From IMG/VR virus record IMGVR_UViG_3300031521_001337, positions 62,001-126,000 of that record: DNA of 64,000 nt. The stretch is one strand, 5' to 3'. Shown here one piece after another: positions 1,392-54,255 of the stretch (the stretch's first letter is position 1; every line of letters begins with the position of its first letter). The notes beneath the pieces were generated by a model. That model was not told the origin of the DNA. It saw only the letters and a list, made by a program, of their open reading frames with translations, and made no database searches. The position numbers and the translations under genes were made by a program.

Positions 1392-1701
1392 TCAAATAGC
1401 AATATTTGAAGAAGCTAAAGCTAGGTATTTAATCTATCAGAATGCTTTGAATTTCTGTAGTATGTGTTGGAGTTTGAATATCACTCTTAAAGATAAGGGT
1501 TATAAATCCTCAATTTTTGAGATAGATGATTTTCTTCCAACATTTACTTATGAAAACGTGTGTAAATTAGCATCACAGTATAATTTCGAAGAACCTAAGT
1601 GTCAGTTAATAACTATCACTTATTGGTGGGATGTACATAATGCTAAACCACGTATTAGTGCTTTTGATGCATTAGTGAATCAATTAAAAAGAGGGATATA
1701 G
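1375..1701 (+). CDS. hypothetical protein
   Basis: 108 aa ORF in the co-oriented gene run. Confidence 0.65.
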   Translation: MIPVNDQIAIFEEAKARYLIYQNALNFCSMCWSLNITLKDKGYKSSIFEIDDFLPTFTYENVCKLASQYNFEEPKCQLITITYWWDVHNAKPRISAFDALVNQLKRGI

Positions 1702-1752
1702 CTCAGCCGAAAAGAGCCTAGGGTCGGGAGTTTGAATCTCTCTATCCCTCCA
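1691..1752 (+). ncRNA. tRNA-like RNA lacking the anticodon arm
   Basis: Acceptor (G)AGGGATA/TATCCCT(C), D-arm GCTC-AGCCGAAAA-GAGC, only CTA then GGGTC variable loop, T-arm GGGAG-TTTGAAT-CTCTC. Confidence 0.75.
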
Positions 1753-6159: not shown

Positions 6160-6566
<407 letters not shown>

Positions 6567-10246: not shown

Positions 10247-11677
10247 ATGCCAAAATTTCATCCAACAACCGCAACTGATGCATATAAATTTGTGCATTGG
10301 ACGCAACGTCCTTCGGGATTGACAAGACTTATGTCTTATGGAGAACCTCGTGTAGGAGGTCAACACTCTCATATTGTTTTCTATGGTATACAATATTTCA
10401 TAAAAGAATATTTTATGACTGTTGTCACTAATGAAGATATTGAACGTGGTGCTCGTAGAAGTTTAAATACTTTTGGTAACCCTGGTTATTTCCCTCAAGA
10501 AATTTGGGAAAAAGTTCGCGATTTAGGATATTATCCTTTAGAAATCAAAGCTGTAAAAGAAGGAACTGTTGTTCCAACTGGTAATGTTTGTTATACAATT
10601 GAAGCTACTGAAGAGTGGTTTGCACCAATGGTTAGTCACTTCGAACCTTGGTTAATGTGGAATTGGTATCCAGTTGCCGTTGCTACTCGTATGTATAATA
10701 TTCATAAAGGTATTACTCCATCATTCAAAATCTCTACTAACAACGCTATGTTGGATTATGTAGTTAATGATTTTGGATTAAGAGGTGCTCAAGGTCATGA
10801 AGCTGCTTGTTTAGGTGGTTCTGCTGCTTTAATCTTTTCTGATGGTTCTGATAATGTTCCAGCAATGGAATTTATTGAAGACTATTACGGAGATGCAACC
10901 GTAGGAAAATCTGTATGGGCAACTGAACACTCAGTAGCAACTGTATTTGGTCCTGGTCAGGGAGAATTTGATTATGTCAATGCTCAATTTGATCGCGCTG
11001 GTGACGATGCTATGGTATCAATTGTTATTGATTCTTATGATGATACTAATTTCATTAAAAATGTTATTGGTTCAGAAGCAATCAAACAACGTATTATCGC
11101 ACGTCCAGGTAGAACTATTTTACGTCCGGATTCTGGTGTTCCGTTAACAAATATGATTAAGTATTCTGAAATGCTTGGTAATATTTTTGGATATCACTTA
11201 AATGAAGTAGATTACAGAGTAATTAATCATAATGTAGGCTTAATTCAAGGAGATGGTATGAATGAAAATTCAATCGTTGATATTTATTCAGAATACATTA
11301 AAACTGGTTGGTCTTGTGAAAACTTTGCGGTTGGTTCAGGTGGTGGTTTGCTTGTTGAAGGATTGACCAGAGATACAGATCGTTGGGCAGTAAAATGCTG
11401 TTTCGCTGTAATTGATGGAGAATCAAAAGATATTCGTAAATCTCCTAAAGGAGATATGACTAAAGCTTCAAAAGCTGGTATTTTGAAACTTCATAAAGCC
11501 GGATCAGAATTCATTACTATCGAAAGTTCTAAAGAACAATATGGTATTAATAATGGATATGCTGATGAACTTGAAATAGTTTATCGTAATGGTAAATTAA
11601 TGAGAGATCAACATTGGACAGAAATTCGCACTATTGCTAAGAGTTATCTTGAAGCCGATTTAAAAACAAGTAAATAA
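10247..11677 (+). CDS. nadV: nicotinamide phosphoribosyltransferase (NAMPT)
   Basis: TDAYK.H, DFGLRG, ATEHSV, VIDSYD, RPDSG, IQGDG, GSGGGLL, RDT motifs. Confidence 0.95.
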   Translation: MPKFHPTTATDAYKFVHWTQRPSGLTRLMSYGEPRVGGQHSHIVFYGIQYFIKEYFMTVVTNEDIERGARRSLNTFGNPGYFPQEIWEKVRDLGYYPLEIKAVKEGTVVPTGNVCYTIEATEEWFAPMVSHFEPWLMWNWYPVAVATRMYNIHKGITPSFKISTNNAMLDYVVNDFGLRGAQGHEAACLGGSAALIFSDGSDNVPAMEFIEDYYGDATVGKSVWATEHSVATVFGPGQGEFDYVNAQFDRAGDDAMVSIVIDSYDDTNFIKNVIGSEAIKQRIIARPGRTILRPDSGVPLTNMIKYSEMLGNIFGYHLNEVDYRVINHNVGLIQGDGMNENSIVDIYSEYIKTGWSCENFAVGSGGGLLVEGLTRDTDRWAVKCCFAVIDGESKDIRKSPKGDMTKASKAGILKLHKAGSEFITIESSKEQYGINNGYADELEIVYRNGKLMRDQHWTEIRTIAKSYLEADLKTSK

Positions 11678-19818: not shown

Positions 19819-19849
19819 TTTGCACTTTCGAAAATTTTTTGTATCTTTG
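19819..19849 (+). promoter_or_regulatory. Bacteroidota sigmaA-type promoter
   Basis: TTTG-N19-TATCTTTG matches the -33/-7 consensus. Confidence 0.8.
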
Positions 19850-19874
19850 TACTATTAATATAATAGTTCAATTT

Positions 19875-20618
19875 ATGGAAAACAAATATTCAAAAGAAAA
19901 TTTAGAAAAAATTGTAAAAGAAAGTTATTCTTTTGCAGATGTGTGTAGATATTATGGGTTGCCTTTAACTGCTGGTAATTATGAAACAATTCAAACTAAG
20001 ATAAAAAAACATCAAATTAGCACAATTCATTTTAAAAGAAATTCTTCAAATGAAACTAAGAATGTGTACACTTTAGATACAATCTTTTGTAAAGATTCAG
20101 CATATACACAAACAAGTAAGTTAAGAGATAAATTATTAAAAAATAATCTAAAAGAACATAAATGTGAATGTTGTGATAATACTAAATGAATGGGAGAACC
20201 TATTCCATTAGAAACACACCACATAGATGGTATTAAAACTAATAATGAATTAAATAATCTTAAATTATTATGTCCAAACTGTCATGCTTTTACTGATAAT
20301 TATAAAGGTAAAAATGTTAAAGATAAAGTTATAGATGCATTATATTGTAATTCTTGTGGTAATACTATAACAAGTTCTTCTGTAAGTGGTTTATGTTTAA
20401 GTTGTTCTGCTAAACGAATAGCTAATGATTTTTACGATGAACTTGGTATAACTCGTGAATATTTAAAAACTTTAGTTCGCACAGAAACATTTATTAATAT
20501 TGGTAAATTATACAATAGATCAGATAATGCTATTAGAAAATGGTGTAAACATTTTAATATACCTTCTTCAAAGAAAGAAATAAATAGTTTGTCTGATGAT
20601 GAATGGGATAAAATATAA
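19875..20618 (+). CDS. HNH homing endonuclease with one in-frame TGA (20187..20189)
   Basis: ORFs 19839..20189 and 20190..20618 are one frame: CECCDNTK*MGEPIPLETHHIDG...N...NLKLLCPNCH. Confidence 0.8.
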
Positions 20619-20623
20619 TTTAA

Positions 20624-20696
20624 GGACTCTAAGCTAATCTGGTGAAAGCGTATGCCTGAAGAGCATGAGAGGTTGGATCAAAACCAACAGAGTCCA
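20624..20696 (+). tRNA. tRNA-Phe(GAA)
   Basis: TATGC-CTGAAGA-GCATG; atypical T-loop ATCAAAA. Confidence 0.88.
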
Positions 20697-20772
20697 CTTA
20701 CGGTTTAGGACCGTTGTTGTTTCGGCAACAAACCACTTGGTAGTGTCGCTACAACCAAGTGGTTATTTACAA

Positions 20773-20845
20773 GATCTGATAGCTCAACTGGTAGAGCATC
20801 GCCCTTTTAAGGCGGGGGTTCTGGGTTCAAATCCCAGTCAGATCA
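20773..20845 (+). tRNA. tRNA-Lys(TTT)
   Basis: TCGCC-CTTTTAA-GGCGG. Confidence 0.95.
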
Positions 20846-20861
20846 CAAAAAAAAAACAATC

Positions 20862-20950
20862 GGGGGTGTGGCGAAATTGGTAGCCGCAGCTAAATATAGG
20901 TTAGACCATAGCGGTCGTGAGACATGGGGGTTCGAAGCCCTCCGCCCCCA
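20862..20950 (+). ncRNA. tRNA-Leu-like RNA with a distorted, 7-nt-expanded anticodon arm
   Basis: Leu-type acceptor, D, variable and T arms; anticodon region GCTA-AATATAGGTTAGACCA-TAGC. Confidence 0.7.
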
Positions 20951-20956
20951 CTAAAT

Positions 20957-21035
20957 TCCCCAATGGCGTAATTGGCAGACGCGTATTCTTCGGAATATGT
21001 CGAGAGACATGTGGGTTCGAGTCCTCCTTGGGGGA
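20957..21035 (+). ncRNA. class II tRNA-like RNA with a UUCG tetraloop in place of the anticodon loop
   Basis: TATTC-TTCG-GAATA; D-arm GCG..CGC; variable arm GTC-GAGA-GAC; acceptor TCCCCAA/TTGGGGG. Confidence 0.7.
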
Positions 21036-21041
21036 GCAAAT

Positions 21042-21122
21042 ATGTCAGTATACAAGCGGTTAAAGTAGTTAGTCTCCAAAACTAATCCGAAAGGTTCGTG
21101 GGTTCAAATCCTACCTGATGTG
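21042..21122 (+). tRNA. tRNA-Trp(CCA) with long variable arm
   Basis: TTAGT-CTCCAAA-ACTAA; variable arm CC-GAAA-GG; G73. Confidence 0.85.
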
Positions 21123-21127
21123 CAAAT

Positions 21128-21210
21128 GCTTGAGTGGCGAAATGGTTAATACGCGTATGCCTTAGGAGCATATGTCGAAAGATGTGTCGGTTCGAGTCCG
21201 ACCTCGAGTA
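21128..21210 (+). tRNA. tRNA-Leu(TAG)
   Basis: TATGC-CTTAGGA-GCATA; class II. Confidence 0.95.
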
Positions 21211-21230
21211 CAAATATAAAAATAGATAAA

Positions 21231-21846
21231 ATGAAATGTTTAGATTATTTAAAAAGAATAGGAGTTAAATTAAATGGCCCTAATGTTCATAAAACTGCAA
21301 TGATTCAACTTTCAGTATGTGAAAGATATGACAAACGATGGAATAGTAAGAATTATTATAATCCTTACACTTTTCAATATGGTCGACGTAAAGAACATTC
21401 AGCTAAAAGTTGGAATCAGATTATAACTCCTCCGATTTTTCCTGATAAACCTAAATATAATTTTGAACGTAAAGAAATAGAAGTTGAAGGATTTAGATTT
21501 TTACAACCCGAGAGTTATATAGATGGTAAAACTTATTTTAAATATGAAGAAACTTCTTTTGTAAGAAAGAATTGGAGACATATTGAAAATGAATGTAAAT
21601 CATATTCTAAAAAATGTGAAGATTATTGGTATTTAAAAGGAATATTTGACGAAAATAACAATTAAGATGGCAGCTAAATGTGTAAAATTAGGATGTGTTC
21701 CTAGAATTAATAATTGGGGAATTAGTTGGTGTACCGAATGTGGTAAATTATTTCCTTTTAATCTAAATCACAAACCGATTAATAAGAATTTTCTTACAGA
21801 AGAATCTAAACTTATTTATGAGAATTATTTAAAATCAAATCAATAA
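21231..21846 (+). CDS. two hypothetical proteins (21231..21665, 21646..21846)
   Basis: ORFs between tRNA blocks. Confidence 0.6.
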
Positions 21847-22061: not shown

Positions 22062-23006
22062 ATGAAGATATTATTTATTGGTAATGGAATTTTTGGAGTT
22101 CCAGCATTAAAAAAATTACATGAAATTTATCAAGTTACAGTTATAACAACACCACCACGACGTTTCGGTAGAGTAGTACAAAATACACCTATTTATATTG
22201 CTGGTAAAGCTTTAGGTTGTTTAGTATATACTGCTAATGATATTAATGAACTTGAACATCGTATAATTAGTACTGATTTTGATTTAATTGTTGTTGCATC
22301 TTATGGACAAATAATTAAAATGAAAATACTTGATTCTGCTAAATATGGTGCAATTAATATTCATGGTTCATTATTACCGAAGTATAGAGGTGCTTCTTGT
22401 ATTCAAGCTGCTATTTTGAATAGAGATTCTGAAACAGGAGTTACATTTATTAAAATGAATGCTGCTGTAGATGCTGGAAGTATTATTACTCAACGTAAAA
22501 TGTATCTACCTGTAGGAATGGGATATATTATGCTTCTTGATCAATTATCAAACTTAGCTGCTGAAAATATTCTTCTAACAATCACTAAATATACTCGTGG
22601 AGTTATTTTAAGACCACAGATAGAAAGTGAAGCTACATATTGTTGTAAAATAACTAAAGATGATTGTTTACTTGATTTTAATAAAAATGTTGATGATGTA
22701 TATGCAAAAATGAAGGCATATGAATCGAATCACGGAGTATTCTTTTATTTACCAGATAACAATACTGAAGTTAAAATTAAAGATGCATGTATGTATACTG
22801 GACGTGTTAAAGGTGATTTCTTAGATGGAGAATTAATTTGTGTTGAAAATAATAAACTTTTTATAAATTGTAATAAAAGTAGTCTTCAGATTGTTTCATT
22901 ACAATTACCTAATAAAAAGGTTATGTCAGCTAGAGATTTTATTAATGGTCATAAGAAGTTAATCACACAATTTGCTGATTTACAAATAATTGTACATAAT
23001 GTATGA
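22062..23006 (+). CDS. fmt: methionyl-tRNA formyltransferase
   Basis: KILFIG...FG..AL..L, TTP.RR.GR, VASYG.I, INIHGSLLPKYRGA..IQ, ETGVT, VDAG.I; ~314 aa. Confidence 0.92.
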   Translation: MKILFIGNGIFGVPALKKLHEIYQVTVITTPPRRFGRVVQNTPIYIAGKALGCLVYTANDINELEHRIISTDFDLIVVASYGQIIKMKILDSAKYGAINIHGSLLPKYRGASCIQAAILNRDSETGVTFIKMNAAVDAGSIITQRKMYLPVGMGYIMLLDQLSNLAAENILLTITKYTRGVILRPQIESEATYCCKITKDDCLLDFNKNVDDVYAKMKAYESNHGVFFYLPDNNTEVKIKDACMYTGRVKGDFLDGELICVENNKLFINCNKSSLQIVSLQLPNKKVMSARDFINGHKKLITQFADLQIIVHNV

Positions 23007-25596: not shown

Positions 25597-25683
25597 GTAC
25601 ACGTTGCCTTAGTTGGTCGACAGGTCCAGGCTGTTAACCTGGTGAATAATATTCCACCGCAGGTTCGAATCCTGCCGTGTACG
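25597..25683 (+). tRNA. tRNA-Asn(GTT) with long variable arm
   Basis: CCAGG-CTGTTAA-CCTGG; GAAT-AAT-ATTC variable stem; G73. Confidence 0.85.
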
Positions 25684-25692
25684 CTTCTATAT

Positions 25693-29271: not shown

Positions 29272-30382
29272 ATGAAATTATCAAATGCGCAAGTAGGTGC
29301 TTTAGCATCAAAGATTAAAAAAGAATTAAAAGAAAAGTATCAAGATCCAATTTATGCTGCAAATGCTGCAATTAGAGAATCGGATGAATACAAAAATTTC
29401 TTCGAACTTAATGAAGATTGTATTATGTTACAAACGATTTCTGATAAATGGAAGGTTCGTTCATATCGTACAAACGATACTATGAATGAAATTCGTTCTG
29501 CATATTTTGAAACTATTCTTAAAGATGCTCCTAGTTTTAGTACAGAGGATATCGAAAATGAAATTCACTTGGCTACGATTGATGTTCAGAATATAGATGA
29601 ACTTATCAAAAAGGTTGCAAATAAATTTGCAGTCTAAAAAATTCAGAGAGAGCTTAGGCTCTCTCTATTTTAACTAACTATGATTATAGAAGAAAAGGAT
29701 TTTAAAATAGTACATGAAGGTGGAAATTTTGTTTTGTATTCAACAACAGGATCAGAAACCAACAAATCAAAACCCGTAGGTTACTACTTACAATTAGAGA
29801 GTGCTCTAAGAGCAATAGTAACTATAAGAAAAGATAAAAAATATACTGGGGGTGAATCGTATACCCAGCTATCTCACGATTTAAGATCTTATACTAAAGC
29901 AAAGAGTGATTTTAATGCTGTAGTTTATTCAATTTATAATCCGATTTCAGACCTTAAAAAACAAGTCATAACTTATTAAACTTAAAATAATGACACATGC
30001 TGAATATTTAGAGCAACAAGAATTAATAGAATATAGAAAACATACTCAAGCTAGTGCAAGAGATATGAATCTAGATTGTATTATTGGTGAAGACATCAAT
30101 ACAATTAATGATGAAGTAGGTGGACAAGATGGAATGTATAGTAACTTTCCAATTAGTAGAGTCTATAGAAATGCCGAATCTATTAGAGTTTATTGTTTAA
30201 CATCACAAGGTGGAGTTGCAATAATTCAAATAGACGGACGTCCTCAAGTAGTAACATTAGGTGAAGATGATGGATATTTCTTTCTTAATTCAGCTAGTTT
30301 ATATTGTGGTTTCTACGGAAATAAAACTAGTTTTGTTTGGGCTCTTTCTGAAGCGTTGTCATTATTCAATAATATAACTTAA
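29272..30382 (+). CDS. three hypothetical proteins (29272..29637, 29680..29979, 29990..30382)
   Basis: ORF track. Confidence 0.6.
29645..29671 (+). terminator. intrinsic terminator
   Basis: AGAGAGAGC..GCTCTCTCT then ATTTT. Confidence 0.7.
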
Positions 30383-53323: not shown

Positions 53324-54255
53324 ACCCAGACGTACCACAATTATTTGTATTAGAAGATTTTATAGAAATGCATAGAGAAAATAGTAGAGAAGAAGATGAC
53401 GAAGAAAACAAAGTATCAATATGGGTTAAAACCGGAGATATTATTCGTGCGTCAATTGATGAAGAAAAATTTGAAAAACTAGAACCAGGTGTTTATACAG
53501 TTGATTATTCTAGAGAAGCAGGTTTATTTATAAAACAAATGGATGTAAAGTCTGATGAATTATTTGTATTTAGTGATTCAATTACAACAAAACTAATGGA
53601 AGAAATTAACATGTTTTGGGATAAAGCGGATCGTTATAAAGAAAACAAATTAATTCACAAACGTGGTATTCTTTTAGAAGGATATCCTGGAACTGGTAAA
53701 AGTTCAATCATTTCAATCTTATCGAAAGAAATTATGAACAGAGGTGGTGTTGTATTTAAAATTACAGGTTATCGTAATTTAGATCATTATGTAGAATTTC
53801 TACGTACATGTTTTAGAAAAGTACAACCAGATACTCCGGTTATAACAATTCTTGAAGATTTGGATCAGTATGAAGATGTTGAGATGGAATTATTAGATTT
53901 TTTAGATGGTAAAACCCATTTAGATCATCATGTTGTTATTGCAACAACAAATAATACTCAAGTAATTCCTGATACTTTCTTAAGACCAAGTCGTATAGAC
54001 TTAAAAATAGAAATACCTTTACCTTGTGAAAACACACGTAAAGAATATTTTGAACATAAAAATGTTCCTAGTGCTGATATTGCCGAGCTTGTAGAAAAGT
54101 CGGATAAGTTTTCATTAGCTGATCTGAAAGAATTATATATTAGTATATATCTATTGGATTACTCTGTGGATGAAGCAATTGCAAAAATTGATTCTCCGAG
54201 AGATAAAAAAAGTTATATGGAATCTCCTATACACAAAACAGTATTGGGAATTTAA
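53308..54255 (+). CDS. AAA+ ATPase
   Basis: RGILL.GYPGTGKS, ILEDLD, ATTN, LRPSRID. Confidence 0.9.
   Translation: MASILDPDVPQLFVLEDFIEMHRENSREEDDEENKVSIWVKTGDIIRASIDEEKFEKLEPGVYTVDYSREAGLFIKQMDVKSDELFVFSDSITTKLMEEINMFWDKADRYKENKLIHKRGILLEGYPGTGKSSIISILSKEIMNRGGVVFKITGYRNLDHYVEFLRTCFRKVQPDTPVITILEDLDQYEDVEMELLDFLDGKTHLDHHVVIATTNNTQVIPDTFLRPSRIDLKIEIPLPCENTRKEYFEHKNVPSADIAELVEKSDKFSLADLKELYISIYLLDYSVDEAIAKIDSPRDKKSYMESPIHKTVLGI

Follow-up and report, generated by a model that had tools for sequence, protein, structure and literature searches.

Odd tRNA calls in phage genomes are usually dismissed as pseudogenes or software artefacts. The locus described here raises the question of whether one of them, the gene odd1 at positions 20862-20950, is a broken tRNA or a gene maintained for an RNA that has the shape of a tRNA and does not decode. 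The gene lies in a window of 64,000 nucleotides (bases 62,001-126,000 of the 213,486-bp IMG/VR virus record IMGVR_UViG_3300031521_001337, which is rated complete by CheckV and represents a large uncultured phage from peat), and all positions refer to this window, i.e., the whole stretch of DNA analyzed, unless stated otherwise. Comparative evidence was obtained for a maintained tRNA body with a closed anticodon arm. Our answer, which is tentative and which we consider narrowly short of probable, is that odd1 is a selected gene for a non-decoding, tRNA-shaped RNA, derived from a tRNA-Leu(UAG), that serves as a mimic or decoy for anticodon-independent binders.

Anatomy of odd1 and conservation of its fold

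The gene and its parts are located as follows:

20862..20950, plus strand: odd1, the whole putative mimic gene derived from tRNA-Leu; 89 nt, CCA not encoded
20862..20868, plus strand: 5' strand of the acceptor stem (7 bp); pairs with 20943-20949 in six G-C pairs and one U.G pair
20871..20887, plus strand: D arm; 3-bp stem GCG/CGC (20871-20873/20885-20887) and 11-nt loop with G18G19
20889..20892, plus strand: 5' strand GCUA of the outer helix of the rebuilt arm; its partner is UAGC at 20909-20912
20893..20898, plus strand: 5' side AAUAUA of an asymmetric internal loop, which has only one nucleotide, A at 20908, on its 3' side
20899..20907, plus strand: inner hairpin GGU-UAG-ACC
20909..20912, plus strand: 3' strand UAGC of the outer helix
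20914..20923, plus strand: variable-arm hairpin GUC-GUGA-GAC, a long arm of the Leu type; stem 20914-20916/20921-20923
20926..20942, plus strand: T arm GGGGG-UUCGAAG-CCCUC; 5-bp stem 20926-20930/20938-20942 and loop UUCGAAG
20943..20950, plus strand: 3' strand of the acceptor stem and discriminator A73 (A at 20950)

The acceptor, D, and T arms of a cloverleaf were recognized in odd1 by ARAGORN, and the features of a class-II tRNA-Leu were found in it, i.e., a long variable arm, a Leu-type D arm with G18G19, and A73. The Rfam tRNA model RF00005 gave no match to odd1 at E<=1, and the gene is without the 5-bp stem and the 7-nt loop with U33 and a conserved anticodon that characterize a decoding tRNA. 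The 17-nt anticodon stem-loop is exchanged for a closed two-helix element of 24 nt (28 nt in the diverged relative described below), and the distance from the D stem to the variable stem is 26 nt (20888-20913) vs. 19 nt, the usual length, in the neighboring tRNA-Leu(TAG). A preliminary description of this DNA had given the stems, the variable and T arms, and the 26 nt in place of 19 exactly as they stand in the sequence, and the Leu-type body that it proposed is intact with respect to A73, the D arm, which matches that of phage tRNA-Leu, and the Leu-type variable arm.

The rebuilt arm was folded with the four core helices of the cloverleaf imposed. The resulting minimum-energy fold consisted of the helix GCUA/UAGC, AAUAUA opposite one A, and GGU-UAG-ACC, and is identical to the arm model of the preliminary description (a GCTA/TAGC stem, an asymmetric bulge, and a GGT-TAG-ACC tip). 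The pair probability of this two-helix arm was ~0.6 in the window gene and >0.9 in the diverged relative; the unconstrained fold was uninformative. Three other structures were rejected. The helix GACC/GGUC of the unconstrained fold competes with the variable-arm hairpin and is gone once the cloverleaf is imposed. The ARAGORN call for odd1, tRNA-Tyr(ata), requires a 4-bp stem to which a G.A mismatch is added and leaves 22 nt of variable loop unstructured; neither feature is kept in the relative, where the stem CUAA/UUAG is destroyed. A 7-nt insertion ACCATAG (20905-20911) in a perfect arm GCUAA-AUAUAGG-UUAGC was also considered; the insertions of the relative lie elsewhere and support two helices.

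Identical copies of odd1 were found on two other IMG/VR contigs and two JGI contigs, and the locus was present in at least 18 peat metagenome runs. The peat contig L080 belongs to a different strain, in which the four-gene array (odd1, a second gene odd2, tRNA-Trp, and tRNA-Leu(UAG); see below) is 98.2% identical to that of the window vs. 90% for the flanking coding DNA; its odd1 has U-A in place of the acceptor-stem pair U6.G67 and one extra C at the 3' end. A more distant variant was found by aligning the contigs of four runs to positions 20300-21700. A 6,532-nt contig of the wastewater run X19 (SRR31712304), the library of which is labeled RNA-Seq but was judged to be probably DNA, spans 20816-21126 with 15 substitutions (13 listed; the two unlisted ones are probably in the heavily covered tRNA-Lys part) and 12 gap letters. 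The formyltransferase (Fmt)-like protein encoded on this contig is only 67% identical to that of the window; the contig comes from a truly diverged relative. Between the window and X19 lineages odd1 is 91% identical (aligned columns) and odd2 95%, and the bona fide tRNA-Leu(TAG) is ~99% identical.

In this relative the odd1' arm of 28 nt consists of an outer helix GCUG/CAGC, CAAAUAUA opposite A, and an inner hairpin GGUC-AAA-GACC. The AAUAUA of the internal loop is kept with CA added before it, and the inner helix is kept and lengthened by one C-G pair with a different tip. All of the 25 shared pairs of odd1 are standard in the three variants (window, L080, and X19 relative). The pair changes in odd1' are U.G to U-A in the acceptor stem, as in L080, G-C to G.U, and A-U to G-C in the fourth pair of the outer helix, where both sides changed. 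When 7 substitutions and 2 insertions were placed at random in 200,000 trials, all pairs remained intact in 0.5-1.5% of them. That a diverged relative preserves the fold suggests a functional tRNA mimic rather than a gene that has broken down. The preliminary description had allowed for a recently broken tRNA, and the relative shows the opposite: it retains the two-helix arm with all of its pairs, one of them changed on both sides, and with one pair added. Nor does odd1 have the marks of a decaying pseudogene, as no pair is broken, its G+C content is 58.9% vs. 29.6% for the genome, and the array is the better conserved part of L080.

Since there is no 7-nt loop and the tip is not conserved (UAG in the window, AAA in the relative), odd1 is best regarded as non-decoding, as had been suggested in the preliminary description. 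The UAG at the tip, to which that description had drawn attention, is therefore a vestige without a conserved role and no anticodon.

The origin of the body was examined by BLAST against 50,697 phage records (2.3 Gb). A full-length match to odd1 (78%, E=2e-7) was the tRNA-Leu(TAG) of Pseudomonas phage RVTF4, and the tRNA likeness of odd1 is therefore well beyond chance; Leu(TAG) genes of T5-like phages were also matched. The class-II tRNA-Leu(UAG) of bacteria and phages (RVTF4, T5-like Klebsiella phages) have the acceptor, D, variable, and T arms and A73 in common with odd1 and are 75-78% identical to it over the alignable length, but have a 5-bp stem and a 7-nt loop where odd1 has the 24-28-nt closed two-helix element. 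Over TGGCGAAATTGGTAG the D arm does not differ from the one in bona fide phage tRNA-Leu genes, and a bacterial tRNA-Leu(UAG) (L079) shares both the D arm and the variable-arm hairpin GGTCGTGAGAC. In a joint structure-aware alignment the sequences nearest to odd1 were all Leu(UAG) tRNAs; odd1 was 75% and 69% identical to those of other phages and 59% to the neighboring Leu(TAG). We therefore consider the body to be of the Leu(UAG) type and no simple copy of the neighbor. The match to the neighboring tRNA-Leu(TAG) claimed in the preliminary description thus holds for the architecture and not for the sequence, and a tandem duplication of this neighbor was rejected on the same identities.

Additional relatives were sought with exact and degenerate DNA pattern searches of IMG/VR, which returned the same phage only, in the JGI metagenomes, which returned only the same phage, strain L080, and one bacterial tRNA-Leu, and in the GTDB genomes, which held no further relative of odd1. 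The neighboring 144-aa protein has a single relative (94%) on a 614-nt contig, and the contigs reached via relatives of the DNA polymerase were too short or too distant.

The cassette and other non-decoding tRNA shapes

The genes odd1, odd2, tRNA-Trp, and tRNA-Leu(UAG) are four class-II-shaped genes that follow each other at distances of 4-6 nt. The neighbors of odd1 in and around the cassette are:

20773..20845, plus strand: tRNA-Lys(UUU), left neighbor of the cassette
20957..21035, plus strand: odd2, second member of the cassette; class-II body of the Leu(UAG) type with the arm GUAUUC-UUCG-GAAUAU and without an anticodon
21042..21122, plus strand: tRNA-Trp(CCA), third member of the cassette; G73 and an unusual long variable arm
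21128..21210, plus strand: ordinary tRNA-Leu(UAG) at the right edge of the cassette, 180 nt downstream of odd1

The Rfam tRNA score of odd2 is 28.2 bits vs. a cut-off of 29, and the gene is nearest to the Leu(TAG) of the phage group itself (65-66%). Where its anticodon stem was UAUGC/GCAUA it now reads UAUUC/GAAUA, and a UUCG tetraloop with a closing C-G pair has taken the place of the 7-nt loop; this C(UUCG)G is a hyperstable cap. The UUCG arm with its 6-bp helix is identical in the X19 relative, in which three changes in the T stem of odd2 keep or repair pairs, including the repair of a U.C mismatch. In the 3' strand of the odd2 acceptor stem one G is deleted in both the peat strain and the relative, by which the first pair and the discriminator are altered. 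As the bodies of odd1 and odd2 are of different origin, two Leu(UAG) bodies have independently lost the anticodon loop.

The distribution of the cassette was inferred from contig L081, the Fmt protein of which is the same as that on the X19 contig. In L081 the tRNA genes Phe, Lys, Leu(TAG), and Ser(TGA) stand in a row with a 13-nt Lys-Leu spacer and without odd1, odd2, and tRNA-Trp; the tRNA-Leu(UAG) at 21128-21210 marks the right edge of the cassette because it directly follows tRNA-Lys there. Since the cassette is absent from L081 and present on the X19 contig, the three genes have been acquired or lost together among close strains, and this pattern of presence and absence fits accessory genes for host interaction.

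The tRNA-Trp(CCA) of the cassette and the tRNA-Asn(GTT) at 25597-25684 (82 and 88 nt, respectively) each combine a long variable arm with G73, and this class-II shape contrasts with the class I usual for both amino acids. The distant relative G004 has a Pro tRNA of 89 nt and a Met tRNA of 85 nt.

A lenient Rfam scan of the whole record revealed two other tRNA shapes without an ordinary anticodon loop. The gene at genome positions 53952-54037 (L087:103-188, outside the window) has a class-I body and a 5-bp anticodon stem with an A-rich loop of 18 nt; it scored 47.5 bits, received no ARAGORN call, and shares GGATATAGCTCAGCC with the second of the two genes. The latter, at window positions 1692-1750, is tRNA-like and 59 nt long; it has acceptor, D, and T arms, no anticodon arm, and CCA right after the stem. 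In its homologue (L044:1501-1570), which is again followed by CCA and belongs to a relative with a DNA polymerase that is 65% identical, the acceptor and T stems carry compensatory changes. Several tRNA-shaped RNAs unable to decode have thus been retained in this phage group.

Proposed function of odd1 and competing explanations

According to the mechanism that we propose, odd1 would be transcribed with the tRNA cluster and released by RNase P and 3' processing, and a host enzyme would add the CCA end, because the gene encodes none and the phage has no CCA-adding enzyme of its own. From what is established for tRNAs, leucyl-tRNA synthetase (LeuRS), for which the anticodon is no determinant, may bind the product or charge it. 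The Leu-type class-II body and the acceptor end would be offered to proteins that ignore the anticodon, i.e., to LeuRS and to those host tRNA-targeting effectors that act on the tRNA body or the 3' end, and odd1 could in this way be a harmless mimic or decoy that is proof against anticodon nucleases. The arm, which is ~3-4 bp longer, kinked, and without a 7-nt loop, would be unable to span the decoding and the peptidyl-transferase centers together. Splicing or trimming of odd1, as envisaged in the preliminary description, appears unlikely from its sequence.

Effectors and pressures of the kind assumed here have been described. The toxin MenT3 depends on the long variable loop, and shortening of the anticodon stem has little effect on it (PMC11162799); toxSAS enzymes modify CCA ends in antiphage immunity (PMC11245113); and host anticodon nucleases have been proposed as a selective pressure on the anticodon loops of phage tRNAs (van den Berg et al., 2023, PMC10264068). 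The accessory cassette, the closed arms, and the Leu-type body give circumstantial support to a decoy function. A wider reading, which we regard as rather doubtful, is that these genes represent an unrecognized phage class of selected anticodon-less tRNA mimics, which would act as decoys for immune effectors or toxins that read the tRNA body or 3' end and would be matured by the host, possibly leucylated, invisible to the ribosome, and immune to anticodon nucleases. Such a class would here comprise the two independently sealed Leu(UAG) bodies in the mobile cassette as well as the arm-less and the long-loop genes.

A number of observations weigh against odd1 as a selected mimic or decoy. A Pfam search of the genome found no CCA-adding enzyme, class Ia (LeuRS-type) synthetase, or peptidyl-tRNA hydrolase, and nothing in the genome points to a partner of odd1. 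There were no RNA runs among the listed holders of the locus. One diverged relative of odd1 is known, and its odd1' and odd2' were rebuilt by script from the listed differences and not read directly. The rebuilt arm changes faster than the body, for which relaxed constraint is an alternative meaning, and as the cassette is mobile, part of the similarity between the lineages could reflect recent transfer. Finally, the extra 3' C in L080 would make the discriminator a C (C73), a poor fit to strict Leu identity.

Several of these observations are also those that would lead one to see odd1 as a functionless young relic, that is, a tRNA-Leu damaged by insertions in the anticodon arm that hitch-hikes in a mobile, endonuclease-rich region and owes its similarity between lineages to recent transfer. 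The cassette is dispensable and its presence varies between close strains, HNH genes flank and interrupt the tRNA cluster, odd1 fails the Rfam tRNA model, the listed holders of the locus provide no evidence of expression, the discriminator varies in L080, and the arm is the fastest-changing part. We nevertheless consider a relic unlikely, given that none of the 25 pairs is lost despite 7 substitutions and 2 insertions (chance ~0.5-1.5%), two of the changes being constructive, that the G+C content of odd1 is twice that of the genome, that the adjacent, independent Leu body carries a hyperstable UUCG cap, which is not random damage, and that the arm-less tRNA-like gene is kept with compensatory changes in a distant relative. 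If odd1 were instead a regulatory or protein-binding small RNA, the body would serve processing and stability and the active part would be the rebuilt arm, especially its AAUAUA loop. It is known that tRNA scaffolds stabilize inserted RNA elements, and AAAUAUAGGU is unchanged in the relative amid changing surroundings. This explanation seems quite improbable to us: no partner turned up, the motif is so short and so rich in A+U that a target search is not feasible in a genome of 30% G+C, and odd2 travels with odd1 yet is without such a loop. A role as a non-ribosomal leucine carrier, charged by LeuRS and kept from translation by its closed arm while the leucine is used by an aminoacyl-tRNA-dependent transferase, is likewise a long shot. 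Both the window gene and the X19 relative have kept the Leu-type body with A73, and the Fmt-like enzyme, which would act on aminoacyl-tRNA, is encoded 1.1 kb downstream in the same cluster; on the other hand, no transferase partner was identified (no family search aimed at such transferases was made), L080 apparently has C73, and leucylation is itself a prediction.

The remaining two explanations keep odd1 within tRNA production or translation. As a processing punctuation, it would be a tRNA-shaped spacer that guides RNase P and 3' nucleases around tRNA-Lys, tRNA-Trp, and tRNA-Leu, in agreement with the spacing of the genes (4-15 nt apart, in one orientation) and with the acceptor and T arms, which are recognized by RNase P, being best conserved. 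In L081, however, tRNA-Lys and tRNA-Leu(TAG) are adjacent without the cassette, and its dispensability to these neighbors argues against punctuation, which also leaves the conservation of pairs in the rebuilt, D, and variable arms unexplained; we judge it very unlikely. That odd1 decodes as a tRNA-Leu after all, either after removal of a mini-intron or by presenting the tip GUUAGAC as a UAG anticodon loop on a bulged stem, is scarcely credible. In the window gene the tip can be read as a loop of 7 nt that contains U33, UAG, and A37 above a closing G-C pair, but in the relative it is a 4-bp helix with an AAA triloop and no UAG. The motif of a bulge-helix-bulge intron, with two 3-nt bulges on either side of a 4-bp helix at position 37/38, is not present, the internal loop being 6+1 nt in the window and 8+1 nt in the relative, and the insert, with 7-11 nt, falls far short of a group I intron, the core of which has at least 200 nt. 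The host is bacterial, because the phage carries a tmRNA and a class-II tRNA-Tyr; an RNA ligase of the T4 Rnl1 type was not found in the genome by a search without a positive control, which makes this a weak blank; and a normal Leu(UAG) gene is located a short distance downstream.

Literature searches found nothing directly comparable to anticodon-less phage tRNA-like genes or tRNA decoys. Phage tRNAs with anticodon-loop changes that have been proposed to evade host anticodon nucleases (PMC10264068) resemble the mimic proposed here in the cluster setting, the change in the anticodon arm, and the counter-immunity logic. A phage tRNA also neutralizes PARIS (PMC11464382), and phage tRNAs evade a retron defence (PMC11555353). 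Such anti-defence tRNAs keep the anticodon and replace depleted host tRNAs, whereas odd1 and odd2 could only be mimics or decoys. Phage T4 encodes the stable RNAs C and D (species 1 and 2), non-tRNA species that are located in the tRNA cluster and co-processed with the tRNAs. They are longer than odd1 and are not known to be Leu-type bodies with closed arms. The tRNA-like domain of tmRNA is, like odd1, a mimic of the acceptor and T arms without an anticodon, but tmRNA has an mRNA-like part and pseudoknots and odd1 has neither. A tmRNA (RF00023) was rejected for odd1 (14 bits vs. a cut-off of 47), as was a permuted tmRNA, which gave 16.7 bits over the overlapping stretch 20926-21039, far below the threshold. 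The tRNA-like RNAs of the gammaherpesvirus MHV68 are tRNA-shaped, processed by the tRNA machinery, and non-decoding. The same applies to mascRNA/menRNA (RF01684; PMC11693755). The anticodon arm of mascRNA is altered as well. The mascRNA/menRNA and MHV68 RNAs differ from odd1 in that they belong to another domain of life, are unrelated in sequence, and are not derived from a class-II tRNA-Leu; a match of odd1 to the mascRNA model was not obtained at E<=1.

The gene odd1 is accompanied by a UUCG-capped twin and by arm-less and long-loop genes in a phage that apparently recodes TGA and carries a tmRNA and an Fmt-like enzyme. Should these odd RNAs be matured and bind to LeuRS or to defence proteins that target tRNAs, they would constitute a new kind of RNA counter-defence and a natural test of which tRNA-binding proteins disregard the anticodon arm. 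The case also suggests screens of phage genomes with models in which the anticodon arm is free.

The tRNA cluster and further features of the phage

The 24 tRNA calls made by ARAGORN are clustered at 14.5-26.8 kb of the window, and replication genes follow downstream of the cluster. The tmRNA encoded by the phage is at 6160-6566; its tag peptide is GNKTISFARTAFMAAA. Between tRNA-Phe and tRNA-Lys lies a spacer of 75 nt (20698-20772) with three stable hairpins, one of them terminator-like (20700-20714); this spacer is nearly unchanged in L081, the proteins of which are only 67% identical. Scans for promoters and terminators gave no signal above that of shuffled sequences.

Endonuclease-linked rearrangement has a hot spot in the tRNA cluster. 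In L080 (Ga0302288_1025267, positions 256-1011 compared with window positions 20776-20850) tRNA-Lys is replaced by an insert of ~750 nt, one part of which resembles the HNH gene region at 20197-20315, and the open reading frame (ORF) at 21231-21648 is missing.

The codon TGA is apparently read as Trp. When TGA was treated as a sense codon, the coverage by stop-to-stop frames increased from 0.76 to 0.89 and the longest frames from 888 to 2,985 aa, mainly in the genome segments 0-40 kb and 120-213 kb. The HNH gene at 19839-20618 is split by an in-frame TGA (20187-20189) that aligns with a Trp in the HNH protein of Erwinia phage Cronus, and a 74-nt tRNA with the anticodon UCA and G73 is located outside the window (genome c[30014-30087]). 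This reading of TGA resembles the recoding of stop codons in late genes (bioRxiv 10.1101/2021.08.26.457843).

The Fmt-like protein (314 aa, encoded inside the tRNA cluster at 22062-23006) has Formyl_trans_N and Formyl_trans_C domains. Its best NCBIfam match was methionyl-tRNA formyltransferase (175 bits, cut-off 201.5), and its nearest cellular homologues are from Patescibacteria (37-40%). A homologue of nicotinamide phosphoribosyltransferase, an enzyme of NAD salvage, is encoded at 10247-11677 (phrog_448, E=6e-121); NAD-salvage genes of this kind have been linked to countering NAD-depleting defences.

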